DNA of 64,000 bases. It comes from Macrostomum lignano (lineage: Eukaryota). The translations under genes and the position numbers were made by a program. Shown piece after piece: positions 3,005-59,648 of the stretch. The notes below the pieces were generated by a model. That model did not search any database. It saw nothing but the letters and a program-made list of their open reading frames with translations, and was not told the DNA's origin. Each line of letters opens with the position of its first letter. The first letter of the stretch is position 1. The stretch covers positions 153,464 through 217,463 of the forward strand of contig NIVC01001966.1 of assembly GCA_002269645.1 (NCBI GenBank). The letters run 5' to 3'.

Positions 3005-3805
3005 TGATCAGCTGTTTTTTGGTGTCATCGTTGCTATGGCAATGAATTTGCTGTTGTCAGTGTTTAGCGTCATGGTTGCTATGGTGATAAACCAGCTGTT
3101 GTCGGTGTTTAGCGTCATGGTTGCTATAGTGATAAATCAGCTGTTGTCAGTGTTTAGCGTCATGGTTGCTATGGTGATAAATCAGCCGTTGTCAGTGTTT
3201 AGCGTCATGGTTGCTATGGTGATAAATCAGCTGTTGTCATTGTTTAGCATCATGGTTGCTATAGTGATAAATCAGCTGTTGTCAGTGTTTAGCGTCATGG
3301 TTGCTATGGTGATAAATCAGCTGTTGTCATTATGTAGCGTCATGGTTGCTATGGTGATAAATCAGCTGTTGTCATTGTTTAGCGTCATGGTTGCTATGGT
3401 GATAAATCAGCTGTTGTCATTATGTAGCGTCATGGTTGCTATGGTGATAAATCAGCTTTTGTCATTGTTTAGCGTCATGGTTGCTATGGTGATAAATCAG
3501 CTGTTGTCATTATGTAGCGTCATGGTTGCTATGGTGATAAATCAGCTTTTGTCAGTGTTTAGCGTCATGGTTGCTATGGTGATAAATCAGCCGTTGTCAG
3601 TGTTTAGCGTCATGGTTGCTATGGTGATAAATCAGCTGTTGTCATTGTTTAGCGTCATGGTTGCTATAGTGATAAATCAGCTGTTGTCAGTGTTTAGCGT
3701 CATGGTTGCTATGGTGATAAATCAGCTGTTGTCATTGTTTAGCGTCATGGTTGCTATGGTGATAAATCAGCTGTTGTCAGTGTTTAGCGTCATGGTTGCT
3801 ATGGT
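3005..3805. repeat. 45-bp minisatellite downstream of RCOR stop
   Basis: Unit CAGCTGTTGTCAGTGTTTAGCGTCATGGTTGCTATGGTGATAAAT; explains ORF 3036..3833. Confidence 0.95.
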
Positions 3806-4364
3806 GAGGTTCATTCACAACCAGTTCAGCTGAATCAAAAAAGTTTTAATCGTTATTTTTGCGAACCGTTTGACATTTATAGGTAGAAAGTGTACTTCAA
3901 GTGTGACTGGGTCGTTGTTGAAATTTTATATATCTGTGTAAAACCTTAAATATATTTTGTTATTTGCTACTCATTAGTAGTTTAGGGCGAAGAAAGTACT
4001 AGTCACTGATAATTAAATGCTATTTCTAATCTCAAATTCATTAGGATTAGCATAAAAAACCGGCTATAAAAATCAATGTAAAAAATTCTTCCCATTTTGT
4101 GCAATGATTTTCATTTCTCAATGTACTTTATCGTGTGTAAATAATGTTTAACAATTGTCGGTAATTATATTCTCGCGCAGTTGTGGTTTAAACTTGCACA
4201 CAATCATACGGCCATGCATTGATATAATAATTGTACCAACTTCGCGTGTTAAACGCATTCTACGATCGATAACTTCTTTAGTGCTTCAAAATTCCAAAAC
4301 TAATTTTTTTTTTTTGGTATTTTTAGATAGAAAATCTGTTAATATTGCCCTTGTGTGTTATTAA

Positions 4365-5342: not shown

Positions 5343-5875
5343 ATGTCGCGCAGCGGCAGCACGGTCGCCGGCGGCCTATTTGTGGCCAATTATTGGGGCG
5401 AGAAGCACAACGGCTTCGATGCTTTGTATTCGAATTTCAATGCCCAGAGCTGCCAGGCCACCGCCGAGCTGCTGGCATTTATGCGCGACTATCAGCAGCT
5501 GGAGGATGCGCACCACAAAGGCCTGGTGAAGCTCAGCAGGAAGCTGGCCTCCTCCAAGTCTCTGACTGGCGGCACCGGCAGCTTCACGCCCTGCTGGGAC
5601 GTCCTCCTGGCTGCTGTGGACCAGATGGCCACGGCCTACTCTGACCTGGCCTCCAACAGCCAGACCCTGCTGCGGGACATTCAGAAGCACAGCGAGGAGC
5701 AGCAGCGGGCGACTAAAGGATTCAAGGACAGCGAGCACCAGCGGACCATGAATAACTGCGCCGCTGCCAAGACCTGCTTCGGCATGGTGCAGAGCAAGAG
5801 GCAGGCCTGCCAGACCCGGCATGCTGAGGCTAGAAAGGTCAGCTGTCTGTCTGCCTGTCTGTCAGGTCTGTCTGT

Positions 5876-5936
<61 letters not shown>

Positions 5937-6081
5937 TGTCTGTCTGTCTGCCTGCCTTTCCGTCTGTCTGTCTGTCTGTCTGCCTGTCCGTCCGTCTGCC
6001 TGTCTGTCTATCAGGTCCGCCTGTCTGTCTGTCAGGTCTATCTATCTATCAGGTCTGTCTGTCTGTCTGTCTGTCTATCAG

Positions 6082-6117
<36 letters not shown>

Positions 6118-9100
6118 ATCAGGTCTGTCTGTCTGTCTGTCTATCAGGTCTATCTGTCTCTCTCTGTCTGTCTGTCTGTCTGTCTAATCTGTCAAGTGTC
6201 CGTTTATATCGGCTGTCCGTGTCTATTTTCATAAATTTGTCTCTATTTAACACTATCTATCCGCCGGGTATATCTTTCTTATCAATATATCTACGTACAT
6301 CTAGCGACATCACGGATGGCCGAACTCCGGACCGAAGGCCACATTCGGCCAACAAAGTCTCTATCCGGCCCTCGGGTTCGTTTAAACTTCACATTTGCAT
6401 TCCGGCTGGCTCAATGTTCAGCGCTCTTCTCTCTATCTAATCTCCTCTTTTCTCCTCTCCTCTCTCCTCTTCCATTGGCTGACCCTGATCTACATCGCAT
6501 ATAACAATTTACCCACACACCACTTCTAAACGTGCAAGATGCTCCCAATTCTCGTAGGCCGCAACGCAACAGCAGCCTACTAACCCCACCCCCCCGCTCC
6601 AATCGGCCAGGTGGGGACTAGCGACTCGGCCTCGGAGAAGGAGAAGAAGAAAGTGATGTCCAAGCTGGAGGCCGCCATCAAAGATTTCAGATTCAACGTA
6701 GAAAAATACAATCACGTGCGCAACGCATTCGAGGAGGGCATGCGCAAGTCGTGCGCCTATTTCGAAGATACCGAAGTTCGCCACCTCGAAGCCATGCTGG
6801 GCTTCGTTGGCCGCTTTGCCCAGCCGCTGGGCTCGGCCGGGCATCAGCTGACTGAAGCCCAGGCCGCCGTTGACAGGCAGCTGGAGGCGACGCACTCGGT
6901 TGATCGCCTGCTGGCTCTGTTTGTTGAACGAACTCGAACTGGCGGCTCGGTGCCTCGGCCAATCAGCGACAGCAGCGACCAGTTCCTTGACTTCAGTGCT
7001 CCGCTGCCAGACGGTGCTGCAGCAGGCGGTGGCGGCGGCCTGACAGCGGGCGGTGGCAATGTGTATTCGACAGGCTCGCAGCTGTCAATAGACCGGCTGT
7101 CGCATCATTCCGCTTCGATTAGCGGCGGCGGCGGAGCAGCGTCGGTTCGTCAGTCGGCCGAGCCCGACCTGATGTCGATGGAGCCGGTGTCGCCGCCGCA
7201 GCCGTCCTTGGCGATGTCCGCCGCTTCGGGTGAGCAGCAGCAGCCGCGAGACGACGCGACGGCAGGCGGCGGTGGCGGCGGCAAAACGAAGCGCGGCGGC
7301 ATTATTGGCAATATTCTCAATCACGGTCGGCGGTCTAGGAATCGAGGTGAATCACTGAGTGGCCACCAGCCGGGGTTTTAGAAATCATTCTAATGCTCAG
7401 AACTGATGTACTTAAACCAAGTGATTTTAGTGGCATCAAATGACACGAGGCAGGTCAGTTGGCCATAATCTGACGCCAAATTCCTAATTTTAATAAGTTG
7501 CAAATCCCAAGCACTGCCCAACAACTCAAAAACAACTCACTGGTGACTCTAGCGATTCTGAGGCAACTCGTGTGACCTTTTAACGACACAAACGACTGTA
7601 AATACGACGGAGATGCGACTGTTAAGTCTGGAGCGCATCACGTGATACAATAGTCGCAAAAAAAGTCTTCCAAAAGGTCGTTTTGTCTTAGCGCTTCGAG
7701 TAGACAAAATAGAGTTGTTATAAATGCGATTCTAATTCATAAAGCGATGCAGAGGCGCTTTGCATCCGCAACTCTAGCGCGGCTCAGATACCGACTCTAC
7801 GGCCCCAGAGTTCATCCTGTGGTCGCGTGATAATCCTTAGCCAATTGTTTAATATAATCTTGCAGTTTGTAAATTGAATTGGTGCGTTCTACAAACCTCG
7901 CAGACGCCAGCAGCTCCGTTGTGTCCAGCGGAAGCGGCGGTGCAGCAGCGGCAGCGGCAGCCCCAGCCGATACGCTGCTGTCGGGCTCGTCGAACGCGCC
8001 GGAGCCGCGAGTAGACGCAGAAGGCTTCACCATTCGCGATGACGAGGATCACCCGTGGCGGAAGAAGAATAATAAAAGCAGCAGCAGCTCTTCTGGTTCG
8101 GACTCAGACTCAGATCAGGAGAAGAAAATCGATGTGAGCTGTGCAAGGATTGATGACTATCGTGTTTAAGAGGGGGCAGAGTGACACTAAGAGTGACAAG
8201 TGGGGGTAGCGTTTGGAGTGACATATCGGCGAAAGTGACGAATGCTGTGACGGTGAGTGATAAATCGGGAGTGACGGTGAGAGTGATAAATCGGGAGTGA
8301 CGGTGAGAGTGATAAATCGGGAGTGACGGTGAGAGTGATAAATCGGGAGTGACGGTGAGAGTGATAAATCGGGAGTGACGGTGAGAGTGATAAATCGGGA
8401 GTGACGGTGAGAATGATAAATCGGGAGTGACGGTGAGAGTGATAAATCGGGAGTGACGGTGAGAGTGATAAATCGGGAGTGACGGTGAGAGTGATAAATC
8501 GGGAGTGACGGTGAGAGTGATAAATCGGGAGTGACGGTGAGAGTGATAAATCGGGAGTGACGGTGAGAGTGATAAATCGGGAGTGACGGTGAGTGATAAA
8601 TCGGGAGTGACGGTGAGAGTGATAAATCGGGAGTGACGGTGAGAGTGATAAATCGGGAGTGACGGTGAGAGTGATAAATCGGGAGTGACGGTGAGAGTGA
8701 TAATTTCTCACTAATTCCCAGGTGCGAATCACCGAAGAGAAGAAGCCGGTGGCCAACGCAGACGAGATCGAGCGGGTTGCAAATTCCATTAAGCTTTTCG
8801 GCCCCAGCCCGTCTGCCGCCATGTTCCGGCCCGCCTCCAGAGCCGGGGTCGGCGGCGGCGGCGGCTCTTCGATTACGGCCTCGTCGACCGACTTGAATGG
8901 CGGCGTTGAGCGGCCGCCGTCTCGGGCGCGGCCGCGGCCAAAAACGCCCGACTGGAGTCGCGGCTTTGGCGGCAGCGGCGGAGGGGGCTTTCAACAGCAG
9001 CGTCAGCGGCGTCAGTCTGTTGACCCGTTCGACTTTGGCGCCGCCTTTGGTGGCTCTCAGCAGCAGCAGCAGAAAGATCAGGAGCAGCAGCCACCGCCAA

Positions 9101-12100
9101 TGCCTTCCATGCCGCCGCCGCTTCCGCCGCCTTCGGAGCAGCCAAATGCCTCCTCATCTTCGCCGCCGTCGCAGCCTCAACCTTCGCTTCCACCGCCGCC
9201 GCCTCCATCGGGTTCGGCGCCGTCGCCGGCTTCGCCAGCGCGTCCGCTGGACCATCGGGGCGACCGGGAGGCTGCGCCACTCAACGCTCTCCTGACTGAG
9301 ACCATCCACTGCCGCTGGTCCGGCGAGCAGTGCAAGTTCCGGGTGCAGGGCAGCCTGACCCTGTCCTTCCCGGCTACTCAGCTGCTGTCCAGACTGTCGC
9401 AGCCGCTGCCCGGTTTGCTGTTTCGCCTGTGCGACACCGGCCTGCTTGGCCAGCACAGGTCATCCAGCCGGCTTGTTAAAGAGTGAGAGACTGGCTAGCT
9501 TTGTCGTGAAGTCTTGATATCATTATCTTGCTCATTAGCTCGTGAACTCTCACGTTGACAGGCTTCGACTCACCCACGAAGTCACGTTTGAAGTCACTCA
9601 TACCGTGGAGTCACTTACTGATGCGGTCACTTACTCATGGAGTCCCTCACTCATTGGAGTCATTCACTGATGAAGTCATTCACCGAAGAAATCACTCACT
9701 CATAAAGTCATTAACTCATAAAGTCATTCACCGATGAAATCACTCACTCATAAAGTCATTCACCGATGAAATCACTCACTCATAAAGTCATTCACTCATG
9801 AAGTCACTCACTAATATAGTCACACACTCATGAAGTCATTCACTGATGAAGTCAGTCACCGATGAAATCACTCACTCATAAAGTCATTCACCGATGAAAT
9901 CACTCACTCATAAAGTCATTCACCGATGAAATCACTCACTCATAAAGTCATTCACTCATGAAGTCACTCACTAATATAGTCACACACTCATGAAGTCATT
10001 CACTGATGAAGTCAGTCACCGATGAAATCACTCACTCATAAAGTCATTCACTCATGAAGTCACTCACTGATATAGTCACACACTCATAAATTCATTCACT
10101 CATGAAGTCATTCACTCATGAAGTCAGTCACCGATGAAATCACTCACTCATAAATTCACTCAACTCATAAAGTCATTAACTCATAGTCACTCACTCATAA
10201 AGTCATTCACTCAAGAAGTCGCTTACTAATAAATTCTCATAGTCATTCACTGATGTAATCACTCTCTGATAAAGTCACACACTCAAAGTCATTCACCGAT
10301 GAAATCACTCACTCATAAAGTCATTCACCGATGAAATCACTCACTCATAAAGTCACACACTCATAAATTCATTCACTCATGAAGTCATTCACTGATGAAG
10401 TCATTCACCGATGAAATCACTCACTCATAAATTCACTCAACTCATAAAGTCATTAACTCATAGTCACTCACTCATAGTCATTTACTCATGAAGTACTTCA
10501 CTGATGAAATCACTCACTTAAAAATCACTCACGCGCTCCGTGGCGCTCCACCTCAGGGAGTTCCCCGAGTCCAACGGTCTCCAGCTCACCATAGACCCGG
10601 CCGCCCTCGCCGACGAGCTGAAACGGCTGGCCAGAGAGCGGCCCGGCATCCAGTTCCTGAGCATGGAGGTGCTCACTTACGATCTGCAGTTGCCAATAGT
10701 CACACCAGGGCCCGTGTTTATCCGGGCCTGCTGGAACTGCGAACAGGAGCATACGGACCTGCGGGTGGAGATTAGCAGGCACCCAACATCGTCTCTGCTT
10801 GTCGGGAAAGTGTCCGTTTCCGTGAGTTATCTACTCGAAAATTTCGGTGTTACAATTTAAGACCAAGTCTAAAATAGAGTAAAGTCAAATTTGTACAAAG
10901 TTAAATTTGTAGGCTCGTGACCTTTCTTGATCTTTTTACGATCATGACCTCAATGAATGAACTTTGTGTGGTTACGAACTCAGTGAATCTACTTTTTAGG
11001 GTCATGGTCTTAGTAGGTCTTATTTATAAGTTCATGACCTTATTGAGTCTACTTTGTAGGATCATGACCTCTATTAATGGGTTTTGTAGGGTCACGACCT
11101 CAATTAATGGATTTTGTAGGGTCATGACCTCTGTTAATGGGTTTTTTAGGGTCATGACCTCTATTAATGGGTTTTTTAGGGTCATGACCTCAATTAATGG
11201 GTTTTATTGGGTCATGACCTCTATTAATGGGTTTTGTAGGGTCATGACCTCTATTAATGGGTTTTGTAGGGTCATGACCTCTATTAATGGGTTTTGTAGG
11301 GTCATGACCTCTATTAATGGGTTTTATTGGGTCATGACCTCTATTAATGGGTTTTGTAGGGTCATGACCTCTATTAATGGGTTTTGTAGGGTCATGACCT
11401 CTATTAATGGGTTTTGTAGGGTCATGACCTCAATTAATAGATTTTTCAGGGTCATGACCTCTATTAATGGGTTTTATTGGGTCATGACCTCTATTAATGG
11501 GTTTTGTAGGGTCATGACCTCAATTAATGGGTTTTATTGGGTCATGACCTCAATTAATGGGTTTTATTGGGTCATGACCTCTATTAATGGGTTTTGTAGG
11601 GTCATGACCTCAGTTAATGAGTTTTTTAGGGCCATGGCCTCTATTAATGGGTTTTTTAGGGTCATGACCTCAATTAATGGGTTTTATTGGGTCATGACCT
11701 CTATTAATGGGTTTTTTAGGGTCATGACCTCAATTAATGGGTTTTATTGGGTCATGACCTCTATTAATGGGTTTTGTAGGGTCATGACCTCTATTAATGG
11801 GTTTTGTAGGGTCATGACCTCTATTAATGGGTTTTGTAGGGTCATGACCTCTATTAATGGGTTTTATTGGGTCATGACCTCTATTAATGGGTTTTATTGG
11901 GTCATGACCTCTATTAATGGGTTTTGTAGGGTCATGACCTCAGTTAATGAGTTTTTTAGGGTCATGACCTCTATTAATGGGTTTTGTAGGGTCATGACCT
12001 CAATTAATGGGTTTCGTAGGGTCATGACCTCAAAGAATCAACTTGGTAAGGTCATGACCTCAAAGAATCAACTTGGTAAGGTCAATGACCTCAAAGAATC

Positions 12101-12696
12101 AACTTGGTAAGGTCAATGACCTCAATGAATCAACCTGGTAAGGTCAATGACCTCAATGAATCAACCTGGTAAGGTCATGACCTCAATGAATCAACCTGGT
12201 AAGGTCATGACCTCAATGAATCAGCTTAGTAAGGTTATGACATCAATAAATGGATTTTTTATAGTCGTGACGTCACTGAGTCTAATTTACAGGGTCATAA
12301 CCTAAACAAGCGTACATAAGGTGTCAGGACCATGATCATAAATGCACAATGTCCCCTCTGAACAAATGAAACGACCGCCAGGCCGAGGTCTCTGGCGGCG
12401 TCCTTGACATGCAGTCCCTGCCGGCCGGTCGCTGGCTGTCGGACACCCGCCTAGCCATCTGGGAGGTGGCTGTCCCGGCCAATCCGGCCGACAAGACGGT
12501 GGTGAAAGCGAAATTCCTGCTGGGCTCCGGGCCTACGGTGCCCAGCCCAGTCCGGGTGCAGTTCATGCTGGACAACAGCAGCTTCTCAGACTGCAGCTTC
12601 GCCCTGATCGGTGCCAACTACAGGCTGGATGTCAATAAGCGCAGGATCATCAGCGGCCAGTACAGCGCTGAGCCTAGCGCAGTGGCACCCCTGTGA
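5343..12696 (+). CDS. FCHO: FCHo (muniscin): F-BAR domain, low-complexity/proline-rich linker, C-terminal mu-homology domain; about 933 aa
   Basis: Six phase-compatible GT-AG exons: 5343-5837, 6611-7346, 7904-8133, 8722-9482, 10557-10821, 12382-12696 (2802 nt). Motifs FVANYWGEKHNGFDALYSN, FRFNVEKYNHVRNAFEEGM, VDAEGFTIR, ETIHCRWSG..FRVQGSLTLSFP, PSPVRVQF..YRLDVNKRRIISGQY. AATAAA near 12810. Confidence 0.92.
5843..6190. repeat. (CTGT)n/(CTGC)n microsatellite in FCHo intron 1
   Basis: Tetranucleotide runs starting just after the donor at 5838. Confidence 0.95.
8245..8703. repeat. 26-bp minisatellite in FCHo intron 3
   Basis: Unit GTGAGAGTGATAAATCGGGAGTGACG. Confidence 0.95.
9560..10530. repeat. 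Composite ~32-bp minisatellite in FCHo intron 4
   Basis: Unit TCACTCACTCATAAAGTCATTCACCGATGAAA with shorter variants. Confidence 0.93.
11055..12230. repeat. 30-bp minisatellite with a palindromic GGTCATGACC core in FCHo intron 5
   Basis: Unit GGGTCATGACCTCTATTAATGGGTTTTGTA, grading into AAGGTCATGACCTCAATGAATCAACCTGGT; explains ORF 10917..12110. Confidence 0.95.
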
Positions 12697-17759: not shown

Positions 17760-18713
17760 CGAGGGGCATTCAAAAAGTTTTGGCAACAGGCAACTAAAAT
17801 CTAGTGGAAGCTTATTATTCTAAAAGTAAGGGTTTACAGTCCTTCTATGTAGTCTCCGCCGCGCTCTATGCACTTCTGATGCCTCCGTATCCACGAATCA
17901 AAGGCGCCACGGTACTCCGATTCAGTGAATGCCCTCAACTCTGAATTGATAGCGCGGGCCAGGTCTTGCGGCCTCTGAAATCGGCGCCCAGCCAGCCTCT
18001 CCGTCAATTTCGGGAAGGCCCAGAAGTCGCACGGAGCTAAGTCCGATGTGACGATGTCAGAGAGGCGCTTGGTGCCGCCAGAACCAAAGCAGCGCAAGAA
18101 CTCCTGACTGCAGCGAACCCGCTCCTGGCGCTGCTCCTCAGTGAGCTGATGCGGCACCCAACGAGCTGTGATTTTTCTGAGACCCAGCTGATCATGCAGG
18201 ATGGTGAAAACGCTGCTATCAGATATGCCAAGTGTCTGGCTCAGTATGGCAACAGAAATGTTTGGGTCCTCAGCCACCAGCGATTGCACAGCGTCAATGT
18301 TGCTCTTGGTCACGGCTGTGCTCGGCCTCCCAGATCGAGGGTTGTCACTGAGGCTGCTCCTGCCGGCGCCAAAAGCCTCAATCCATTGCGCAACAGTTCT
18401 ATAAGATGGAGCTTGATCCCCTATCACCTGTGCTAAGTCGGCATGAATTTTGGTGGCGTTTTCTCCAAGTTGTACGCGCATGAAGATGTAGAAGCGCGCA
18501 TTTTCTGAGCTGATATTTTCCATATTATGTCAGAAGCTGAAACTTAGTTATGGTTAGCTGTGAATTGTGCAATAACGGGTGAAGCTATTGAGCTGAAAGT
18601 TTATACGTTGGTATCAGGCATGTTACTAAAGACATTCCTAAAATTTAGTGCATTTTGCTTGAGCCAAAGTATATCTGCATATGCAGTTGCCAAAACTTTT
18701 TGAATGCCCCTCG
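17760..18713 (-). mobile_element. Mariner (Tc1/mariner) transposon, 954 bp, internally deleted
   Basis: Perfect 28-bp TIRs CGAGGGGCATTCAAAAAGTTTTGGCAAC (17760-17787, inverse at 18686-18713); TA target duplication at 17758-59 and 18714-15. Confidence 0.95.
17834..18523 (-). CDS. Mariner transposase with in-frame deletion of the catalytic core (229 aa)
   Basis: HTH region, PRSGRP, WVPHQL, then IVTSD fused directly to LAPCDFWAFPKL; open from ATG to stop. Confidence 0.85.
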   Translation of the reverse strand: MENISSENARFYIFMRVQLGENATKIHADLAQVIGDQAPSYRTVAQWIEAFGAGRSSLSDNPRSGRPSTAVTKSNIDAVQSLVAEDPNISVAILSQTLGISDSSVFTILHDQLGLRKITARWVPHQLTEEQRQERVRCSQEFLRCFGSGGTKRLSDIVTSDLAPCDFWAFPKLTERLAGRRFQRPQDLARAINSELRAFTESEYRGAFDSWIRRHQKCIERGGDYIEGL

Positions 18714-19269: not shown

Positions 19270-20158
19270 ATGTCGACTCTGAGGGCGCTCCTCCTCTCTC
19301 TGCTGAGCCTCGCCTGCCTGCGCAGCCTGCAGTCCTGCCAGCCGCCCTACCAGTCCGTGTCCGGCTTCTGCCTGCTCGTGAACACCACAGCCGCAGTCGG
19401 CTGGTGCCAGGCGGCTCGTCTGTGCCAGGCCGTCGGAGGCGAGCTGGTGATGGAGCCGGCCGCCATCCGGGCAGCTGCGCAGTTCGCCACGGGCTCGGTG
19501 ATGCTGTGGGTCGGCGTCACCGACATGCTGGAGGAGCGGCTCACCAGCAGGTGAGGCAATCAGCATCTAGTATTTCTGCACACAGCAAATTTGATGCCAC
19601 CTTTTGCTAAACAAAGAACTTCAAAAATCTCATCCGATGCTCATTAATTAGCCTTCGATAAGTACAGATGCTGATTATCTAGATAATATCAGGAGGGTCT
19701 CACTGAACTGCTATTTTCATCTTCTCAGGAGCGGCTGGCGCATGGCAAATGGAAGCGAGTTTGTTGCCCCAAACTCGGACTGGGCAATTGGCTGCCCAAA
19801 CAACATAGACAGCTCGGATGACCTGCTGGCGCTATTGAGTGGTGCTCTGTGCGACTTGCGGGAATTTTTCCAAGTCGGCTTCGTCTGCCAGCCCGTGGCG
19901 ACGCCGAACAGCGGAACCTTCCGTCGGACCAGCTTCCTGCAGCTGGGCGACATCACGCCCTACTACTGCTACACGGAGGTGCAGTCGGTGCAGCGCAGGC
20001 TGCTCTGCGTTCGCCAGTGCGCTGCCCGCTGGGAGTGTCGGGCGGCTCTGTTCAACCGGGCCGAGTCTCGCTGCCGCATGCTGGACTTCGCCGACGCAAG
20101 CGCGGGCGACGCCATCGAGAAGAGCGGCGCTTGGGAGAAGTTCGTCAAGGTCTACTGA
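19270..20158 (+). CDS. Secreted C-type lectin domain + PAN/apple-like domain protein, intact copy A (236 aa)
   Basis: Exons 19270-19550 and 19729-20158 (GT-AG, phase 2). Signal-peptide-like N-terminus; CTLD motifs C..GFC, WCQAARLC..GGEL, LWVGVTD, GWR, W...PNN, FVC; PAN-like CVRQCAARWECRAALFNRAESRCRML. Confidence 0.85.
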
Positions 20159-22961: not shown

Positions 22962-23042
22962 ATGTCGATTGACGACTCCGACGGCGTTCCTCCTCTTATT
23001 TGCTGACATCACCGACATGCTGCAGGAGCGGCTCACTAGCAG
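22962..23042 (+). pseudogene. Internally deleted lectin exon-1 remnant
   Basis: ATGTCGA..CTCCGACGGCGTTCCTCCTC joined to TCACCGACATGCTGCAGGAGCGGCTCACTAGCAG|GT, i.e. the two ends of lectin exon 1. Confidence 0.7.
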
Positions 23043-23563
23043 GTTTGTTCAGAACTTAAAATCATAATCGAGCTGATATATCAATCATATTTCCAGTCTG
23101 AAGCGCTGAGCTTAATGTATCAACAATTGTGGTTTGTTAGACAATTATAGAGACATTCTGTTTCTCGTAGTGCCGACGGTTCACGCCCACGATCGTATTG
23201 CTTGGCTAATCCCTAAATAAGTCATCAGAAATCGGGAAACCTAAATAATTTTTTACAGTTTTAAAAAATTAGAACTATAGATTTACAGTGCAATGCCATG
23301 TGGCATTAACTGTAATGGCGATTTGAACACGAAATATTCTTTTATTAAAAACTGCTCAAATTGACTCAAAATTGTAAAAAAGCTAATTCGAATCCAAGAG
23401 TATGTGCTACTCGTAAGCAGCAGACGGTCCATTTGCCCATGCACCTGAGCAACATGACCAATCAGAGTCTGCCAAGCTGCGAGAGGTTAAACACCGGTAT
23501 ATAGCAATTTCCATGCGAATGATGAAGCCCGTACAGCTGGAAAGCTGCTGGTTTACCGCAGGG

Positions 23564-23719
23564 ATGTCGACTGCAAGGGCGCTCATCCTCTCCCTGCTGA
23601 GCCTCGCCTGCCTGCGCAGCCTGCAGTCCTGCCAGCCGCCCTACCAGTCCGTGTCCGGCTTCTGCCTGCTCGTGAACACCACAGCCGCAGTCGGCTGGTG
23701 CCAGGCAGCTCGTCTGTGC
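23564..23719 (+). pseudogene. Lectin exon 1, 5' half, interrupted by an insertion
   Basis: MSTARALILSLLSLACLRSLQSCQPPYQSVSGFCLLVNTTAAVGWCQAARLC, near-identical to intact copies, then abrupt loss of homology. Confidence 0.85.
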
Positions 23720-26339: not shown

Positions 26340-26456
26340 TCGGAGGCGAGCTAGCTGGTGATGGAGCCGACCGCCATCCGGGGAAGCTGCGCTGTTCGCC
26401 ATGGTGAACCTGTGGGTCGGCGATACCGACATGTTGGACAAGCGACTCACCGGCAG
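26340..26456 (+). pseudogene. Lectin exon 1, 3' half, degenerate
   Basis: CGGAGGCGAGCTAGCTGGTGATGGAGCCG...CTGTGGGTCGGCGATACCGACATGTTGGACAAGCGACTCACCGGCAG|GT, with indels. Confidence 0.75.
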
Positions 26457-27056
26457 GTATGGCTTTTAACGTCAACAGTAGGATTTTAATTACAACTGTT
26501 ATTGTAAACTTTTTGCAAACATTATTAGGGAGTATCAACACAATCCAGCGATCTGTTTTTAGAAAAAAACTTTCGCTGTTCGATAAATTTAGAACAAGGA
26601 TGACATGCTGGCTCTACAAAGTGGTCTCGAGCACCGCAGGCAGGATGAGCGACGTCTGGGCAGGGCAGGCAGAGAAGTGGAGGAGAGCGTTGCAGGAGAT
26701 GGAGTCCTCACGTGACGCTTCACTCAATTTTCACTCAAAAATCTGACCCACTGGCAGAATTGTTGAATATCTCAACTGTCCGGAAAACTGACGACTTGAT
26801 TCTTGTTTAATAAGGTTTGCAACGAGACCAAGGAACACAGCAATATAGTAAGTTAGATTCTGCCGAATTCTATGAGCGTTGTGCTATATCAGCCAATCAG
26901 GATGAGCGATACGGGTGACAATGAGGAAAGTGTTTCTAAGCCGAATTCAATTGGACATTGGGGTTTCCAATGGAATTTGGATTTAAACAGAAGCCCGATA
27001 CGCTTTCAAGGCTGCAGAGTCTCCTGAAGTTTTTAATAACATTTAACTCTGAAGTG

Positions 27057-27940
27057 ATGTCGACACCAAGGGTGCTCCTTCTCGCCCTGCTGAGCCTCGC
27101 CTGCCTGCGCAGCCTGCAGTCCTGCCAGCCGCCCTACCAGCCCGTGTCCGGCTTCTGCCTGCTCGTGAACACCACAGCCGCAGTCGGCTGGTGCCAGGCA
27201 GCTCGTCTGTGCCAGGCCGTCGGAGGCGAGCTGGTGATGGAGCCGGCCGCCATCCGGGCAGCTGCGCAGTTCGCCACGTACTCGTGGCTCTGGGTCGGCG
27301 TCACCGACATGCTGGAGGAGCGGCTCACCAGCAGGTGAGGCAATCAGCATCGAGTATCTAGTGTTTCTATCTTAAAGCTAATTTGGTGCTACTTTTGCGG
27401 AATAAAAAACTCTGAAAATCTCATCTGAATGCTCATTCATTAGTCTTCAATGCGTAAAGATGACTATAGCTTAAATTATAATAGCTGATCTGATATTCTC
27501 ATCTTCTCAGGAGCGGCTGGCGCATGACCAATGGAAGCGAATTTGTTGCCCCAGACTCTTACTGGAGATCTGGCTGGCCAGATAATGGAGGCAGCTCGGA
27601 TGACATGCTGGGTCTAATCAATGGTCTGCTTTACGACTTTGTCTCATCAAACGCCATCGGCTTCGTCTGCCAGCCCGTGGCGACGCCGAACAGCGGAACC
27701 TTCCGTCGGACCAGCTTCCTGCAGCTGGGCGACATCACGCCCTACTACTGCTACACGGAGGTGCAGTCGGTGCAGCGCAGGCTGCTCTGCGTTCGCCAGT
27801 GCGCTGCCCGCTGGGAGTGTCGGGCGGCTCTGTTCAACCGGGCCGAGTCTCGCTGCCGCATGCTGGACTTCGCCGACGCGAGCGCGGGCGACGCCATCGA
27901 GAAGAGCGGCGCTTGGGAGAAGTTCGTCAAGGTCTACTGA
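27057..27940 (+). CDS. Secreted C-type lectin + PAN/apple-like protein, intact copy B (235 aa)
   Basis: Exons 27057-27334 and 27511-27940; same structure as copy A. Confidence 0.85.
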
Positions 27941-32099: not shown

Positions 32100-33050
32100 G
32101 TTGGAGCGCATTGACTTGCCGCCCAGGCGAGGAAGAAGTTCATTCTGGACGCTTTGCTGAAGGTTTACGATATCTAATTTGCAGCTGGCCTCGCCGAAGG
32201 CATTTGAGGTCAGTAACTACGAGTCGGTCCAAATGTACTCTGACGCGGTTGAGTCGCAGATTTTGAGAGAGCCTTACCGGGACGCTACCGCCAGTGCCCG
32301 GATGGGTGGCGGCCGCGGACGATCACCGCTTTGGGAGCCTTGCTGAAGGCGGATGTCATTTCTGGGAATTGAGTTCGACACTGTTCAAGCTGTCAAGAAG
32401 TTGCCCGATGATAAGGCGAGGAAGCTGATTCAGCTGGTTGAGGAGGAGTCGGTCAAGGTGAGACTGAGTCAGCGGGAGCTCAAACAGCTCATTGGCAAGC
32501 TTGGGTGGGCGGCGCAAGTCATCACCAGGTCATCGAGCGGTGCAACGCCCTGCAGCGGGGTCAAATGACGTTGACGGATGTGGATGCTAAGTTGCGCAGC
32601 CAGCTGAACTGGTGGAAGATGGCCCTTCAGTCGTGTCGCTGGGTACAGCTGTGGACATGCTATCGAGGAGTCATGACCATTGAGTCGGGTTCGTGTGGGA
32701 GAGGCGATGCTGCGCTGCTGCGCAGTCCCTCTGGTTGGTGGAACTGGTGCTACGTGGATTGGGTGAAGGATTCGGAAGCAGTTTTTACTGGCTTGCCGAT
32801 CGATTACAAGGAGGCTTTCGCTCCTCTGCTGGCGGTGCTGAGGTGGAGAGAAGAGCTGAGAGGCTGCAAAGTGAGTATTTTCTGCGACAACCAGCCCGTG
32901 TGCCACATCATCAATAAACGCGTGTCGAGGTTCGCTGAGCTGCAACGGCTGCTGCAGACGGTCGCGCTGATGTGCCTGCGGTGGAACATGAGCGTTTGTG
33001 CGTGTCACATTCCGGGTGAATTTCAGATTTTTGCCGATGCCACCATGAGC
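32100..33050 (+). mobile_element. DIRS/Ngaro-like retrotransposon RT-RNase H remnant
   Basis: FLGIEFDT..KLPDDKARKL..RELKQLIGKLGWAAQVI; IDYKEAFAPLLAVLRW..GCKVSIFCDNQPVCHIINK..HIPGEFQIFADA; central RT deleted, no recombinase ORF seen. Confidence 0.8.
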
Positions 33051-33199
33051 GCAGTCAGCTGCTTAAATTTTTTATTCGCTGCTACAATTTCGTTTGGCCA
33101 TATGTTTTAAATTCACTGTATCGATAGGCTTTTGTCTCGGCCGAAAGCGGCTGGTGTCACCAGTTTTGCTGGTTGAGATTCGGCGACGAGTGGACGAAA

Positions 33200-39984: not shown

Positions 39985-42412
39985 GTGCAATAATCCTTGG
40001 TTTATTAATAGCAATAATCCTTGATTAATCAAGTGCAATAATCCTTGGTTTATCAAGTGCAATAATCCTTGGTTTATCAAGTGCAGTAATCTTTGGCTTA
40101 AAAAGTGCAATAATCCTTGGTTTATCAAGTGCAATAATCCTTTGTTTATCAAGTGCAATAATCCTTGGTTTATCAAGTGCAATAATCCTTGGTTTATTAA
40201 GTGCAATAATCCTTGGTTTATTAAGTGCAATAATCCTTGGTTTATCTAGCGCAGTAATCCTTGGCTTATCAGGTGCAATAATCCTTGGTTTATCAAGTGC
40301 AATATTTGTTTATCAAGTGCAATAATCCTTGGTTTATCAAGTGAAATAATCCTTGGTTTATCAAGTGCAATAATCCTTGGCTTATCAACTGCAATAATCC
40401 TTGGTTTATCAAGCGCAGTAACCTTTGGCCTATCAAGTGCAATAATCCTTGGTTTATCAAGTGCAGTAATCCTTGGCCTATCAAGTGCAATAATCCTTGG
40501 TTTATCAAGTGCAATAATCCTTGGTTTATCAAGTGTAATAATCCTTGGTTTATCAAGTGCAATAATCCTTGGCTTATCAACTGCAATAATCCTTGGTTTA
40601 TCAAGTGCAATAATCCTTGGTTTATCAAGCGCAGTAATCCTTGGCCTATCAAGTGCAATAATCCTTGGCTTATCAAGTGCAATAATCCTTGGTTTATCAA
40701 GTGCAATAATCCTTGGTTTATCAAGTGCAGTAATCCTTGGCCTATCAAGTGCAATAATCCTTGGTTTGCCAAGAGCAATAATCCTTAGTTTATCGAGTGC
40801 AGTAATCCTTAGTTTTCCAAGTGCAGTAATCCTTGGTTTATTAAGAGCAATAATCCTTGGCTTATCGAGTGCAGTAATCCTTGGTTTGCCAAGAGCAATA
40901 ATCCTTGGTTTATCAAGTGCAATAATCCTTGGTTTATCAAGTGCAATAATCCTTGGTTTATCAGATGCAATAATCCTTGGCTTATCAACTGCAATAATCC
41001 TTGGTTTATCAAGTGCAATAATCCTTGGCTTATCAAGTGCAATAATCCTTGGTTTATCAAGTGCAATAATCCTTGGTTTATCAAGCGCAGTAATCTTTGG
41101 CCTATCAAGTGCAATAATCCTTTGTTTATCAAGTGCAATAATCCTTGGTTTATAAAGTGCAATAATCTTTGGTTTATCAGATGCAATAATCCTTGGCTTA
41201 TCAACTGCAATAATCATTGGTTTATCAAGTGCAATAATCCTTGGCTTATCAAGTGCAATAATCCTTGGTTTATCAAGTGCAATAATCCTTGGTTTATCAA
41301 GCGCAGTAATTTTTGGCCTATCAAGTGCAATAATCCTTGGTTTATCAAGTGCAGTAATCCTTGGCCTATCAAGTGCAATAATCCTTGGTTTATCAAGTGC
41401 AATAGTCTTTGGTTTATCGAGTGCAGTAATCCTTAGTTTTCCAAGTGCAGTAATCCTTGGTTTATTAAGAGCAATAATCCTTGGTTTATCGAGTGGAGTA
41501 GTCCTTGGTTTATTAATATCAATAATCCTTGAATAATCCAGTGCATTAATCCTTGGCTTATCAAGTGCAACATTCTTTACTATCAAGTGCAATAATCCAT
41601 GGCTTATCAAGTGCAATAATCCTTGGTTTATCAAGTGCAATAATCCTTTGTTTATCAAGTGCAATAATCCTTTGTTTATCAAGTGCAATAATCCTTTGTT
41701 TATCAGGTGCAATAATCCTTGGTTTATCAAGCGCAGTAATCCTTGGCTTATCAAGTGCAATAATCCTTGGTTTATCAAGTGCAATAATCCTTGGTTTATC
41801 AAGCGCAGTAATCTTTGGCCTATCAAGTGCAATAATCCTTGGTTTATCAAGTGCAGTAATCCTTGGCCTATCAAGTGCAATATTCCTTGGTTTATCAAGT
41901 GCAATAGTCCTTGGTTTATCGAGTGCAGTAATCCTTGGTTTTCCAAGTGCAATAATCCTTGGCTTCTTGAGTGCAGTAATCCTTGGTTTGCCAAGAGCAA
42001 TAGTCCTTGGTTTATCGAGTGCAGTAATCCTTGGTTTTCCAAGTGCAGTAATCCTTGGTTTATTAATAGCAATAATCCTTGGCTTCTTGAGTGCAGTAAT
42101 CCTTGGTTTGCCAAGAGCAATAGTCCTTGGTTTATCGAGTGCAGTAATCCTTGGTTTTCCAAGTGCAATAATCCTTGGCTTCCTGAGTGCAGTAATCCTT
42201 GGTTTGCCAAGAGCAATAGTCCTTGGTTTATCGAGTGCAGTAATCCTTGGTTTTCCAAGTGCAGTAATCCTTGGTTTATTAATAGCAATAATCCTTGGCT
42301 TCTTGAGTGCAGTAATCCTTGGTTTGCCAAGAGCAATAGTCCTTGGTTTATCGAGTGCAGTAGTCCTTGGTTTATTAATAGCAATAATCCTTGGCTTATC
42401 GAGTGCAGTAAT
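39985..42412. repeat. 24-bp satellite array
   Basis: Unit GTGCAATAATCCTTGGTTTATCAA with higher-order variants; explains ORFs such as 40246..42384. Confidence 0.97.
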
Positions 42413-43056
42413 CTAAGTGTTTTTATTTAGTCCTTTAATAAAACCTTTTAATAAAAAAATTTACACTACTACTTTTAATTTAAACTACTTAGATTCGAAC
42501 CTAGGTCGCTGCATTAGCAGTCTGGTCTGTTCAGCTCTAGGCTAGCTCTCATCGAAGTTATCAGTGATGTTGTACCACTTATATAATTCAACACTCACAC
42601 CAAGTCAGGTAGAGTAAAAAGTCTCACGAAGCAGTTATGACATAATCAATTTCTTAGGCAAGTCAGTACCAGTGTCTATGAAAGTTTACAATATGGTTAC
42701 GTAATATAAATTCAGTACTGCGCTATGCTTTCACACTCAAAGCTGTGACGCAATTCAATTGAGTGTCAAATTCAGCCAGTACACAGACGATAAATAAAGT
42801 GTATTGTGATGCAATCTATTTCAGAATCAGAATTCAACCAGTCAGTTTTTCTGCTAGCATTCTTACGATGCATTTCAAGTCGAAAGAGCTGCTTGACCTT
42901 TGCAAAAAAGCATGTTTTTCGAATATTTAATCCCTTTAGCATCAAGCAATTTCTTAGCCACGATGCATGTACTGTCACGGGAAAATTTCTGATCGAACAG
43001 TGCAAGTTCGAAGAAAATCGGTTGAGCCGTTTTTGCTAAAATCGATCACACACACA

Positions 43057-49480: not shown

Positions 49481-50487
49481 ATGTCACCTCCGAGGGCGCT
49501 CCTCCTCGCCCTGCTGAGCCTCGCCTGCCTGCGCAGCCTGCAATCCTGCCAGCCGCCCTACCAGTCCGTGTCCGGCTTCTGCCTGCTCGTGAACACCACA
49601 GCCGCAGTCGGCTGGTGCCAGGCAGCTCGTCTGTGCCAGGCCGTCGGAGGCGAGCTGGTGATGGAGCCGGCCGCCATCCGGGCAGCTGCGCAGTTCGCCA
49701 CGGGCTCGGTGATTCTGTGGGTTGGTGTCACCGACTTTCTGGACGAGCAACTGACTAGCAGGTAAGGCAATAAAAAATCACTTAAATGTGGAAATCTCAA
49801 CAAGGATCTAAAAAAATATACTATTTTCCTCAAAATGCGTCAAAGAGCAAGCTGCCAAACTGCGCAGCAATTCAGTTTAGAAAGTCCTTTTACCTTTCTT
49901 GCTGTGCAGTGAATGCTGAAGGACGCTACTTGAAGGAGCTTTCACTATAACGATCAGACCATTCAAAAAGCAACTAACTCAGCTTCGCGAACTGATATAA
50001 CGTTTTTTGAGGCTCGTGGTTCGAGTTTTTATTTAACTTAAATTTCCACCTTCTCAGGAGCGGCTGGCGCATGGCCAATGGAACCGAATTTTTTGCTCCC
50101 AACTCTGACTGGCCATTTGGCTGCCCAAACAATAATGAGCACTCGGACGACATGCTGGCGCTATCGGGTGGTGCTTTGTGCGACTTGCGGGAATTTTTCC
50201 AAATCGGCTTCGTCTGCCAGCCCGTGGCGACGCCGAACAGCGGAACCTTCCGTCGGACCAGCTTCCTGCAGCTGGGCGACATCACGCCCTACTACTGCTA
50301 CACGGAGGTGCAGTCGGTGCAGCGCAGGCTGCTCTGCGTTCGCCAGTGCGCTGCCCGCTGGGAGTGTCGGGCGGCTCTGTTCAACCGGGCCGAGTCTCGC
50401 TGCCGCATGCTGGACTTCGCCGACGCGAGCGCGGGCGACGCCATCGAGAAGAGCGGCGCTTGGGAGAAGTTCGTCAAGGCCTACTGA
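49481..50487 (+). CDS. Secreted C-type lectin + PAN/apple-like protein, intact copy C (236 aa)
   Basis: Exons 49481-49761 and 50058-50487; same structure as copies A and B. Confidence 0.85.
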
Positions 50488-51853: not shown

Positions 51854-53151
51854 ATGGCAAGCACGATTGTCGATGCAACTACAGCAGCGAATGCGGCCTC
51901 TCCTGCGGACGCTGTGCCCAAGTCCGTCATCACAATCTCCATCCTCATTGCCGGATTTTTAATCGGAGTCCTGGTCGCCAAGCTGGTGAATTACTGTTAC
52001 AACCGGGCGGATGTGCCGGACAATGCCAGCGACATCAGCGAGCACACAAAAGGCCTGCTGAGAATCCAACTGGCCCTTCTGAAGATGGGCAAGTCCAGCG
52101 GCTTTGGCGGCGCCGGCGGCGAAGCTGGCGGCGACCCGGAGGAGGCCAAGAGGCAGCAGCAGGCGACGGTGCTCAGCATGTGGAAGATGAAGGCGATGAA
52201 CAAAGCGGCCGCGGCGCAGAAGACTCAAGAGGAGGCGGCCGCGGCCGGTGCTGCCAACGTTCAAGTTGTCGACGAAGCGCCTGACGATAAGAAAGGCGGT
52301 GCGTCTGGCGCCAAAAAAAGCGGCGCCGGTGGAAAAGCAGGCAAGTGCTTTCTTTGATTAAAAATTGCAGTCATATTTTACTAAAGAAATCCCGCGTTCA
52401 TAAACTGCAATTTTCAACTCCAGTCTCTGGCACCAAGCCGAAGGCGGTTGCCAAACCGAAGAAGCTCTTTCCCAACTCGCTGTCCGGCGTGGCGCCAACT
52501 GAAGCTCCGGCGCAGTCGGCATCCAAAGACGGGCTAGGAAGTGTCGCGGGAGCGGCTACTACTTCGAAGGCAACGCCACCGGCAGCTGCTGGCTCTGTCA
52601 AGGCTGCAACAACGACGACAACTAAAGCAGCTCCTGACCATGCAGCGACGCCTGCACCGAAGGCAGCTCCAGCGAGTGCAGCGACGCCTGTACCGAAGGC
52701 AGCTCCAGCGAGTGCAGCGACGCCTGCACCGAAGGCAGCTCCAGCGAGTGCAGCGACGCCTGTACCGAAGGCAGCTCCAGCGAGTGCAGCGACGCCTGCA
52801 CCGAAGGCAGCTCCAGCGAGTGCAGCGACGCCTGCACCGAAGGCAGCTCCAGCGAGTGCAGCGACGCCTGCACCGAAGGCAGCTCCAGCGAGTGCAGCGA
52901 CGCCTGCACCGAAGGCAGCTCCAGCGAGTGCAGCGACGCCTGCACCGAAGGCAGCTCCAGCGAGTGCAGCGACGCCTGCACCGAAGGCAGCTCCAGCGAG
53001 TGCAGCGACGCCTGCACCGAGGGCAGCTCCGGCTCCCACATCGAAGCCCGGTTCAGCCAAGCCAAAGCAGCAGCCGACGAGAAGTCAGGGGCCGACAACT
53101 GCAACTGCGGGCGGAAAATCCAACCCGAGCAGTCCGAAGTCCAACGCCTGA
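51854..53151 (+). CDS. Single-pass membrane protein with Ala/Pro/Lys-rich repetitive tail (404 aa), GC-AG intron
   Basis: Exon 51854-52340 contains the hydrophobic segment VITISILIAGFLIGVLVAKLV. Donor AG|GCAAGT at 52341 and acceptor TTTTCAACTCCAG at 52423 join in frame to 52424-53151. Confidence 0.65.
52642..53037 (+). repeat. Coding 36-bp tandem repeat (AATPAPKAAPAS x ~11)
   Basis: Unit GCAGCGACGCCTGCACCGAAGGCAGCTCCAGCGAGT. Confidence 0.9.
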
Positions 53152-53857
53152 GACTGGATGGCTGGTTTCAAATTGTATGAGCTGGATAATGATTACGATT
53201 TGAAAAACGTTTTTGTAAAAGTTTTACTTGTTTGAATAAGTGCCTATTGATAATCGTTACTGGCTTCATAAATTAGTCTTCACATTATCTTGTTTCGGAA
53301 AAAAGTATTCAATTGAAAAAAAACTATTTCTTTTTGTAGTACTGTCTTTTGACAGTTTTGGAAAAAAACCTTTTTAGCATTTAGAGGAATCTGATTAAGA
53401 AGATAAATACTGTAGTAATAAGAATTACCGAAGCTTATACTCGTAGTCCCTTAAAATTTGCGAGTGCCCAATAATTTATTATCTGTTGTACTCGAATTTA
53501 AAACCTGTTTTATCATGCATACCTAATAAAGGGTGATATATCATATGATACTCTGCGTAATCAAGTAACTCTGCAAAATTACAAATATGCACTTTTTCTG
53601 TCTAAGCTATGTGTCTATTGATTTTCCAGAGAAATACTCTGAGCAGTGCTTAATTGGATTTTAAACTGCGAAAAGTGCATACGAAGCGATTAATGTAGAC
53701 TGTGTCGGGTAAAATTTGGTTATGTCTATGGCCAAAGTCGCAGAGGCTAAAGGGTAGAAGGAGGCGGGCTTAACGAGAGACCATTAGCACCAGCGGAGCG
53801 AGGGAACGAGTCCAAGGTCCATAAATTTCAACCGCGCACAACCGCTTAGTTCAAGCA

Positions 53858-56979: not shown

Positions 56980-59120
56980 TCAACAGCCGTTTCCAATTTC
57001 GCTCAGACGTCTCAGAGCCGCTTCGTCAAAGCCGACGTCGCTCCAGCCGCGGAGTCGAGCCTCCATCATCGGGGACCGCGCCGGCAGTGGCATCAGCTCC
57101 TCAATGGTGTCCACATTCTCAACACGCACATCCGGTGGACATGACTGTCGTGAATGCGATGCGTCCATTTCCTGCTGACAGCGATAAACCGCTCGATGTA
57201 AAAGAAGGAAAAGCAGCTCCAAAAACTCAAAGGCAAACGTCAGCGTAACCCCGATGGTGAGACTGCCCAGGCCGCCAATCCGACTGACCAGAGCGCTGAG
57301 GGTGATCTGCAGCTTCTCCTGCTTTAAAACCGTATTGTAATTGAGTCTGGAGACCCGAATCAAAGCCATTCGTTCAACCAGTGCCTGTTCCTCCGGGTTG
57401 TTTTTCCAGTCGCCCGAGGCGCCGATGCTTTCCAGGTTGCAGAATTCCAGCAGCTTCGGCAAAGCCAGCGCGCCAGCCGGTCTGAGGCGTTGAGGCTGGC
57501 GTGTCGGAGAGCACCGCTCACGAGGCCCATCCAGCGCAGCTGCGACAGTCGCGGTGCCCAGTTGGCCACAGACAGGTGGCTGTTATAGAAGTACTGCGTG
57601 CACGGCTTGCGACACGCGTTCAGGGTAAAATGACGAATTATAGAGCTCAGATTCAGGTGCTGGACGCAGGTGTATCGTTTCAGGAACTCTTCCAGCTGGG
57701 TCTCGTGATAGTGACCGCAGTAGGGTACCTCTTTGGAGGGCACTTGCGAAATGATTTGGAAGGCAGAGACGCAGTTACATATTTCGGTTACACGCTTGCC
57801 TAGGAGGTCACTGACGCAAGCTGTCTGCGTATAATTGTAAACGTGGTCGTGGTCTCTGATCGGCGTCTGCTCCTTCGGGTTGGAGCACTCCCCTTCTGGG
57901 TAGTTCTCCTTTTCAACTCGCACCTGCGGCATGAAGGGGACAGGAAGGCTTGAAAGTGCGACTGTTTTAAATTCCGTAGTTAATATTTTCATTAAAAGTC
58001 TTATTCCCTACTTCTTCATGAAGCCTTTACGTATAGTCAAATCTCCTGCTTTTAGGAATACACAATCATGAAGCTTATTTCTCACCGTCTGATAGCGGAT
58101 CAGCGTGGCGGTGCCCGTTTGCACCGTGAAGCTGTCCGAGTCCACATTCGGGAACGTTCCGGGCTCGTGAAGCACTACGCGGAAACCCGTAGCCTGATTG
58201 AATGCGTTGAACGCTTGCTCCTCCATTTCCCGGAACGATTTGTTAACCGCGCTGCCTCCATACAGATCAGAGTTGCGAACATTTGACAGAATGAGAGATA
58301 CTTCGCTGAGTTGCTCAGTAGTACCTAGCATTTTCAGATTATAGCAGGTGAAGAACTCTGGATGATGGATGCGGGTGAATTTAAACTGGCAGGTTGTTTC
58401 CTGAATCTTCGATGGGCTGGCGTTTCCGATGTGGCGGGCGATGCAGAAGGGCATGAGGTCGGTCAGATGGTGGCTCACTTCATTCAACTCCGATTCGTTG
58501 ATTAGCTGAAAGTAGGTTGTCACCCGATCGTTGTGAAACAATTTCGAAGCGTCGAGGTAGCGCCCCTGCCGCACTAGGCTGCCCATGCCGCGGCGAAGTT
58601 CCTGCGACAAGTTGGCTGGGCTGACGATTCTGCCGGAACGCCAGTGCTCCCGCGCCGCCGAGGCGAACGGGCTGAGCGAGCACACAGTGAGACTGGGGAA
58701 TGGAGTCGGGTCGTTGACTCGCTCTTCCACCTGGAAGTTTGTATGAAAAGACAAGAACTCGGAGATGAGGTTATGCGAGCAGTACAAGAGGAATGCCGTC
58801 ATGCTGACTAGATAGAGCAGCCAGTGCAGGCGCAGAACTCGATGTCGGGTTGCGTAGCACTTTCGCACGCCTCTCAGCGTAGTATTTTCGACGAATGTCT
58901 TCAAAGCAAAGTGTAACCATTTTGTCTGTGCGACTGGCGCAACAGCTTGCAGGGGCTTTGATCGGGATTTTGAGCAGCGCCTGAAGCGGACATTGTAGCA
59001 TACGAGCCGTACTAGATTTGTTCCTTTTCGATTTTTCAAACTTGGCTTAGAAAAATTTCCACATTGTCTGTACAGAGGGGATTTTATAGAGCGCTGCATA
59101 TCAGATGTTTGTATTCTCAT
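56980..59120 (-). CDS. DEG/ENaC (amiloride-sensitive channel family) subunit of about 659 aa, with one frameshift
   Basis: Exons 59120-58086 and 57923-56980: FVENTTLRGV, TM1, FPSLTVCSLSP, HPEFFTCY, GFRVVLHEPGTFP, YTQTACVSD, CRKPCTQYFY, SRIGGLGSLTIGVTLTFAFEFLEL. Frameshift near 57462, repaired by one extra T in a TTT run. Start codon uncertain (59120 or 59099). Confidence 0.85.
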
Positions 59121-59648
59121 GGGGATGGGACTGGCACCAGGAAAGAGACAAACCGAACGAAGTAAAAAATTCACACACCGTGACGCGTCGTAACTCGATA
59201 AGCCGAAAAAAGTTTTCTGCGTGGAAACTTTACGACTCAACCGTCAGTCCTTTCGAAAGCTTCGCAGCTGCTTCGGCTTTTAAAATACTCAAAATATAGA
59301 AACTATCAACGACACGAAATTCTGCGTATTGCAGAGTCGAATTATTTGTGTCGTGTTGAATTATGGGTCAATAATTGTTTCATCTTCGAGTCGAAAAATA
59401 GGATGTAATATTAAAGCATCTGAGCATTCAGATGTCGAACTCAAGGCTAAAGCACTGTTAAACTTGTCCGCGTTTATGATTGGCTTGATTATAAAATATG
59501 CACCGCAGCTCAAAACAATTTTGTAATTTTTCGAGAGCAGGAGAGAATGAAAATAGACAGAGAGCAGATCTGCTTTAACGTCTGGATCCTCAGAAACATG
59601 TCTACATTTTTCCTCCAATTTTTCATCGACTGTCCACAGAGGTCTCTT

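Follow-up and report, generated by a model that had tools for sequence, protein, structure and literature searches.

The C-type lectin-like domain (CTLD) is a classic fold that has been reused with and without Ca2+. Ca2+-independent versions, such as the domains of NK-cell receptors and the antifreeze proteins (AFPs) of sea raven and poacher, keep the scaffold while their site-2 ligands are degenerate, and none of these is known to carry a disulfide at the two ligand columns, Glu and Asn. Herring and other type II AFPs are CTLDs with two extra disulfides, one of which, Cys89-Cys111, joins the same two segments as the cysteine pair described below: the segment before the Q/E-P-D/N motif is tied to strand β4 before WND, at the ends of the Ca2+ loop, and the binding surface is rigidified (PMC1891086). 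A single Ca2+ ion is coordinated in the herring protein by both Gln92 and Asn113, which are equivalent to the Glu and Asn ligands (PMC1891086).

The locus studied here contains three tandem paralogues, A, B and C, each made of two exons on the forward strand of the 64,000-nt stretch of DNA that was analysed (the window). Copy A (19270-19550 + 19729-20158) and copy C (49481-49761 + 50058-50487) have spliced ORFs of 236 aa, and copy B (27057-27334 + 27511-27940) one of 235 aa. Exon 1 of copy A, from the ATG at 19270 to the donor AG/GTGAGG at 19550/19551, comprises codons 1-93 plus 2 nt and encodes the signal peptide and the N-terminal half of the CTLD. After an intron at 19551-19728 and the acceptor TCTTCTCAG/G, exon 2 encodes the C-terminal half of the CTLD (the long-loop region, β3-β4 and C4), a PAN domain and the stop codon. 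Exon 1 of copy C ends in the donor AG/GTAAGG. All three products consist of a signal peptide, a long-form CTLD and a PAN/apple-like domain, and the mature secreted protein has about 214 residues. Each copy has GT-AG splice sites and an intact ORF, and A and C compared with each other give a dN/dS below 1; pseudogene status was therefore rejected for the three copies.

Relics of exon 1 of this gene family are also found between A and B and just upstream of B (23558-23719, 22981-23043 and 26340-26458); their nucleotide identity to copy A is 95.7% over 162 nt and 80.8% over 125 nt. A matching exon 2 was looked for in the window and none was found, and the relics look like truncated pseudogene fragments. 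A candidate fourth CTLD at 35832-35818 on the reverse strand was rejected, as its 'FVCEP' peptide match is due to chance. The window is eukaryotic in character, with GT-AG introns. Long minisatellite arrays (243-944, 3036-3833, 8110-8994, 10917-12110, 40246-42430 and 52345-53203) take up a sizeable fraction of the window and give rise to spurious repetitive ORFs on both strands. Two transposon relics are present. An ORF on the reverse strand (17834-18523), which immediately precedes copy A, has a Mos1/Tc3-type transposase HTH (PF17906, E=5.7e-7), and a weak RT RNase H-like fragment lies on the forward strand (32505-33110). Neighbouring host genes comprise exons of an FCH/F-BAR protein (5343-7381, forward strand), an amiloride-sensitive sodium channel of the ASC/ENaC type that is split over two ORFs (57360-59240, reverse strand, E=4.8e-30) and an NHL-repeat protein (62494-63456, reverse strand).

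Domain identity was examined by structure prediction and profile searches. An AF2 run on the sequence of copy A alone reached a pLDDT of 39.5 only, and the model used here was built instead for mature A from a 54-sequence family alignment (pLDDT 94.3, pTM 0.90). The model shows the CTLD fold with its two helices, two β-sheets and long-loop region; the long-loop block that holds Cys116 is the less confident part of the CTLD, with a block mean pLDDT of 88. Foldseek matched the model with probability 1.0, and a target TM of 0.7-0.8, to the CRDs of Mincle, Endo180, CD23, codakine and SIGN-R1. The outer disulfide C1-C4 and the WIGL-type core are in place: C52 (ARLC), C147 (FVCQP) and LWVGVTD fall on the DC-SIGN columns and are invariant or nearly so across the family. 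Lectin_C (PF00059) remains below its gathering score in B (15.2 bits vs a cutoff of 22.6, E=0.036), and the Pfam scan gave no Lectin_C match for A or C; 43 of the 54 aligned family members match it at E<=0.01. PAN_1 (PF00024) aligns with A at E=2.6e-4 and 21.2-21.3 bits, just short of its cutoff of 21.4; 36 of the 54 aligned relatives match it, and the PAN core cysteines C187, C191, C197 and C209 are present and conserved.

The position of the two extra cysteines was established by alignment with canonical domains. A phmmer search against PDB placed GCPNN of copy A on GEPNN of Mincle and DDL on EDC, with weak E-values (0.02-0.09). A profile of the six-member subfamily aligned with the CRD of DC-SIGN at E=4e-7, and here the Glu of EPN is matched by residue 116, the Cys of EDC by 126, the Asn of WND by 135 and the second inner Cys by 139. 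Cys116 of copy A (codon TGC, 19793..19795, forward strand) hence occupies the Glu column, and Cys135 (TGC, 19850..19852, forward strand), which lies in strand β4 of the model, the Asn column. The corresponding peptides read WAIGCPNN...GALCD in A, WPFGCPNN...GALCD in C and WRSGWPDN...GLLYD in B. Copy C has TGC codons at 50122-50124 and 50179-50181; copy B has Trp (TGG, 27575-27577) and Tyr (TAC, 27632-27634), each codon being one nucleotide away from Cys (TGC/TGG and TGC/TAC).

The same alignment accounts for the inner cysteines. The C2 column is taken by Leu126 in copy A (19823..19825, forward strand), where EDC has become DDL, and by Met in B and C (DDM). Its partner column, C3, holds Glu139 in copy A (19862-19864, forward strand), Glu in C and Ser in B. 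The inner disulfide C2-C3 (EDC ... WNDxxC) is thus absent in the three copies, and so is the site-2 ligand set (E/Q-P-N/D and W-N-D, plus a Glu located two positions ahead of C2): A and C present C-P-N, D124 and L-C-D, and B presents W-P-D, D124 and L-Y-D. The domain is a CTLD by its fold and is not a canonical Ca2+-dependent CRD. These results agree with much of what a first-pass annotation of this DNA had proposed, namely that the domain is a CTLD, that A and C carry TGC codons at two Ca2+-ligand columns where B carries codons for aromatic residues, and that the inner cysteine pair is missing throughout. As a side observation, B differs from A and C by the gain of five aromatic residues in the block that varies among the copies (G75Y, M/I78W, D111Y, C116W and C135Y) and by the lack of FF at 140-141, and the aromatic make-up of its binding face is markedly different.

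Three of the five site-2 ligand columns of A and C keep an oxygen ligand (CPN...DD...CD). One may accordingly imagine that Cys116 and Cys135 stay reduced and combine with Asn118, Asp124 and Asp136 in a mixed O/S site that would bind a softer metal, for instance Zn2+, Cu+ or Cd2+, in which case the metal site would have been re-tuned and not abolished. We regard this as very improbable: extracellular thiolate sites are uncommon, the Asn column otherwise serves disulfides in the family, and the residues found in relatives, described below, are such that no conserved metal site is apparent in the subfamily.

No homologous proteins were found with copy A alone, a search with the family alignment gave 8 distant members, and one with the subfamily alignment gave only P0001 and P0003. 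An exhaustive HMMER search of 1.84 billion representatives retrieved 161 relatives, many of them about 240 aa long and with the CTLD+PAN layout of A, B and C. An exact look-up of A, B and C in the protein collection found none of them, and metagenome scans with protein patterns and with an exact 23-mer from the PAN block gave no match. Literature searches on Macrostomum C-type lectins, CTLD+PAN proteins and the CPN motif turned up no account of the family; within the same scope, no disulfide on the Glu and Asn ligand columns was found described.

Identity is 45-50% for the three closest relatives, P0001, P0002 and P0003. Two of them, P0001 and P0003, originate from a single JGI sample and are encoded on contigs about 1 kb long, which offer no genomic context. 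The third, P0002, for which no encoding contig was found, is a UniRef entry of Macrostomum lignano, a guanylate cyclase gene model with the CTLD-PAN unit fused into it. To judge from these relatives, the window probably derives from a macrostomid flatworm. In this entry, and in P0154 from the same species, the complete unit spans residues ~455-675 of a 720-aa 'guanylate cyclase' model and is placed between the HNOB-associated part and the remaining cyclase domain; the most likely cause of the fusion is that annotation merged a nested or neighbouring gene into the model. Similar fusions are seen in P0029 (a 'sodium/solute symporter') and P0016.

All three closest relatives also lack the inner pair (DDF), and their residues at columns 116/135 are K/Q, S/R and T/T. 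Because the nearest relatives without the inner pair have such residues there, Ca2+ site 2 had probably been lost already, to judge from these alignments, before the cysteine pair arose. This modifies the idea, put forward in the first-pass annotation, that a disulfide staple had taken the place of the Ca2+/sugar site. A disulfide is plausible on the basis of the cysteine count given below; displacement of a working site is not what the relatives indicate. The pair is more likely to be a compensatory staple for the lost inner disulfide than a swap for a working Ca2+/sugar site.

The cysteine count is as follows. Mature A and C have 12 Cys, and mature B has 10. Family-conserved cysteines include C23/C34 (C0-C0', the long-form hairpin), C52/C147 (C1-C4) and the four of the PAN core. 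Two more, C46 in the 'WC' motif at the start of CTLD helix α1 and C174, the first Cys of the PAN domain (codons 19405-19407 and 19967-19969 of copy A, forward strand; B and C have both), are conserved as a pair, and P0013 and P0032 lack both. This joint conservation and joint loss suggests that C46-C174 may be an interdomain disulfide between CTLD and PAN, and the pTM of the two-domain model fits such a bridge. Once the family-conserved cysteines are paired, C116 and C135 are the only ones left, and a disulfide between them is the most economical reading because they are the sole cysteines without a family-conserved partner. We place slightly more than even confidence in the existence of an intradomain Cys116-Cys135 bond in A and C. 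Besides the count, its support includes the herring Cys89-Cys111 bond as a natural precedent between equivalent segments, the sharing of one Ca2+ by the corresponding herring residues, and the single nucleotide that separates both B codons from Cys.

If so, the bond would tie the long loop to strand β4. The subfamily of A, B and C has lost the inner disulfide C2-C3 as well as the acidic/amide residues that bind Ca2+ at site 2, and the new bridge would serve as a staple in place of both the C2-C3 bond and the Ca2+ ion. The Trp and Tyr of B would fill the same two contacting positions, and W/Y in B, like K/Q, S/R and T/T in the relatives, could be viewed as alternative contact pairs. Sequence, fold, column assignment and cysteine count are established here, and the bond, its stabilising role and any effect on ligand binding are inferred from them; the contrast between A and C on the one hand and B on the other might amount to two binding modes, as the first-pass annotation had suggested. 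A geometric caveat is that two side chains that share a Ca2+ ion, close as they are, do not necessarily bring their Cβ atoms within reach of a disulfide, and a loop shift of 1-3 Å (our own estimate) would probably be required.

Exposure of both residues on the ligand-binding face of the CTLD admits another explanation, in which C116 and C135 are surface thiols engaged in intermolecular disulfides, which would join A and C covalently into homo- or hetero-oligomers or attach them to some other secreted protein. Copy B, devoid of both cysteines, could then be a non-crosslinking form. A precedent is that of Anopheles CTL4 and CTLMA2, invertebrate CTLs that reportedly pair through intermolecular disulfides. 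This explanation seems, however, quite unlikely: two thiols located a few Å apart normally bond to each other first in the oxidising secretory pathway, and intermolecular disulfides usually involve one odd Cys, while here the number is even.

An intradomain Cys116-Cys135 bond was further considered in the light of the rest of the family. The first-pass annotation had pointed out that both cysteines are present or both absent in the three copies, and had viewed this as covariation. Family-wide, this view is not borne out. Cys occupies the Asn column in 18 homologues, always without Cys at the Glu column; at the latter it occurs in 0 of 150 homologues and is thus unique to A and C. Instead, the Asn-column Cys pairs in 18/18 homologues with a β3 Cys located four residues after C2 (C2+4), following the pattern DCxxxC...CDxxC (counts 18/0/1/66, Fisher p=1.6e-17). 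On the strength of this covariation, the Asn column is a proven and recurrent disulfide site of the family, and since it pairs with the C2+4 Cys, a side chain located there can join a bridge. The canonical C2 and C3 columns also show joint behaviour, as they are lost together across the family (70/1/4/7, p=6.6e-7).

Position 130, which corresponds to C2+4, holds Leu, Ile and Ser in A, B and C, respectively. Hence A and C have the Asn-column Cys only, the second β3-β4 disulfide of the family (C2+4 with the Asn column) is absent, and they are the only members in which the Asn-column Cys occurs without its usual β3 partner. This bears on the proposal in the first-pass annotation that independent variation of the two positions among homologues would speak against the bond. 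Taken literally, such independent variation does exist; the homologues concerned have, however, another, well-supported partner in β3, which A and C lack.

Divergence among A, B and C is uneven. The only strongly diverged stretch of the mature coding sequence is a variable block at codons 75-143 (19492..19876 in copy A, forward strand), which holds both cysteines and is interrupted by the intron; the signal-peptide codons have also diverged. The block shows 31-65 nt differences in 207 nt (dS 0.29-0.51). Codons 23-74 and 144-237 show 1-2 nt differences in 156 and 282 nt, which amounts to 99.3-99.6% nucleotide identity and a dS of 0-0.025. Between A and B, homology extends from 1 nt before the ATG to 2 nt beyond the stop codon. 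The duplications behind A, B and C are old, since the introns of the copies have diverged and the flanking DNA is at random-level identity (0.46-0.49). The contrast between 1-2 nt differences in the scaffold and 31-65 in the block suggests that the scaffold has been homogenised by repeated gene conversion while a divergent ligand-binding block was kept.

The both-or-neither pattern of the cysteines can be understood in this context. Of the 69 codons in the variable block, 16 show a pattern in which A equals C and differs from B, and because of this split the distribution of the cysteines by itself reflects no more than the gene tree. Their co-occurrence amounts to a single evolutionary event in one lineage. 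A sceptical interpretation follows: the pair may have no joint function and may consist of tolerated substitutions in a fast-evolving loop block, correlated by shared ancestry or by a gene-conversion tract. Those 16 codons, the mosaic structure of the block with its complex conversion history, and the observation of one event only are all in its favour. We nonetheless find this interpretation unlikely. Cysteines are rare in these loops, and unpaired Cys is selected against in secreted proteins; Cys parity is kept in all three copies. Both cysteines lie on two of the five ligand columns of Ca2+ site 2, for which a rough estimate of the chance probability is ~0.01 (10/946), assuming two residues placed at random among ~44 loop positions. 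Lastly, both cysteines are kept in A and C despite a block dS of ~0.37 and 17.5 replacement differences, and the dN/dS of 0.32 between the two blocks is a sign of constraint.

For codons 100-143, dN/dS is 0.36 between A and C and 0.93 between B and either of them, which suggests that protein evolution may have been faster on the branch that separates B from A and C. A broader speculation, which we consider doubtful, is that A, B and C belong to a flatworm recognition family with a CTLD-PAN scaffold conserved by conversion and a diverged ligand block equipped with alternative Ca2+-site staples, a disulfide in A and C and Trp/Tyr in B. If it were true, Ca2+-free substitution of a disulfide for a metal would generate distinct binding surfaces under a logic like that of diversified immune or gamete-recognition receptors.

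Should the bond of A and C be confirmed, their disulfide, located exactly on two columns of Ca2+ ligands, would provide a clean example from nature of a structural metal being replaced by a covalent bond, and might be useful for lectin engineering; combined with the mosaic pattern, it would be a sign that flatworms have a diversifying and so far uncharacterised family of secreted recognition proteins. No general principle would be changed, as extra disulfides near the Ca2+ loop of CTLDs are known from type II AFPs.

Comparison with known systems puts A, B and C close to canonical CRDs (DC-SIGN, Mincle, MBP-A and SIGN-R1) in their fold, WIGL-like core, C1-C4 bond, loop lengths and long-form N-terminal hairpin; the C2 and C3 columns are spaced by 13 residues, as they are in DC-SIGN. 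They differ in having CPN/LCD (A and C) or WPD/LYD (B) in place of EPN/WND, in lacking the inner disulfide and in the addition of PAN. Within their own family, P0005, P0021, P0027, P0030 and P0118 (DCxxxC...C(D/E/S)xxC) share the two-domain layout, the 'WC' and PAN cysteines and the Asn-column Cys. In contrast with A and C, members of the P0005 type combine the latter with a β3 Cys and have E, Q or D at the Glu column. With regard to type II AFPs, the cysteines of the herring-type bond are located at E-3 and N-2, in a domain with an intact Ca2+ site and inner disulfide, whereas those of A and C are on the ligand columns themselves, in a domain from which inner disulfide and Ca2+ ligands are both gone. 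The positions equivalent to Cys89-Cys111 are A113 and A133 in copy A, not Cys, and the AFP bond is therefore an analogue only. Hence, the cysteine positions of A and C differ both from the extra disulfide of AFPs and from the second β3-β4 disulfide of their own family.
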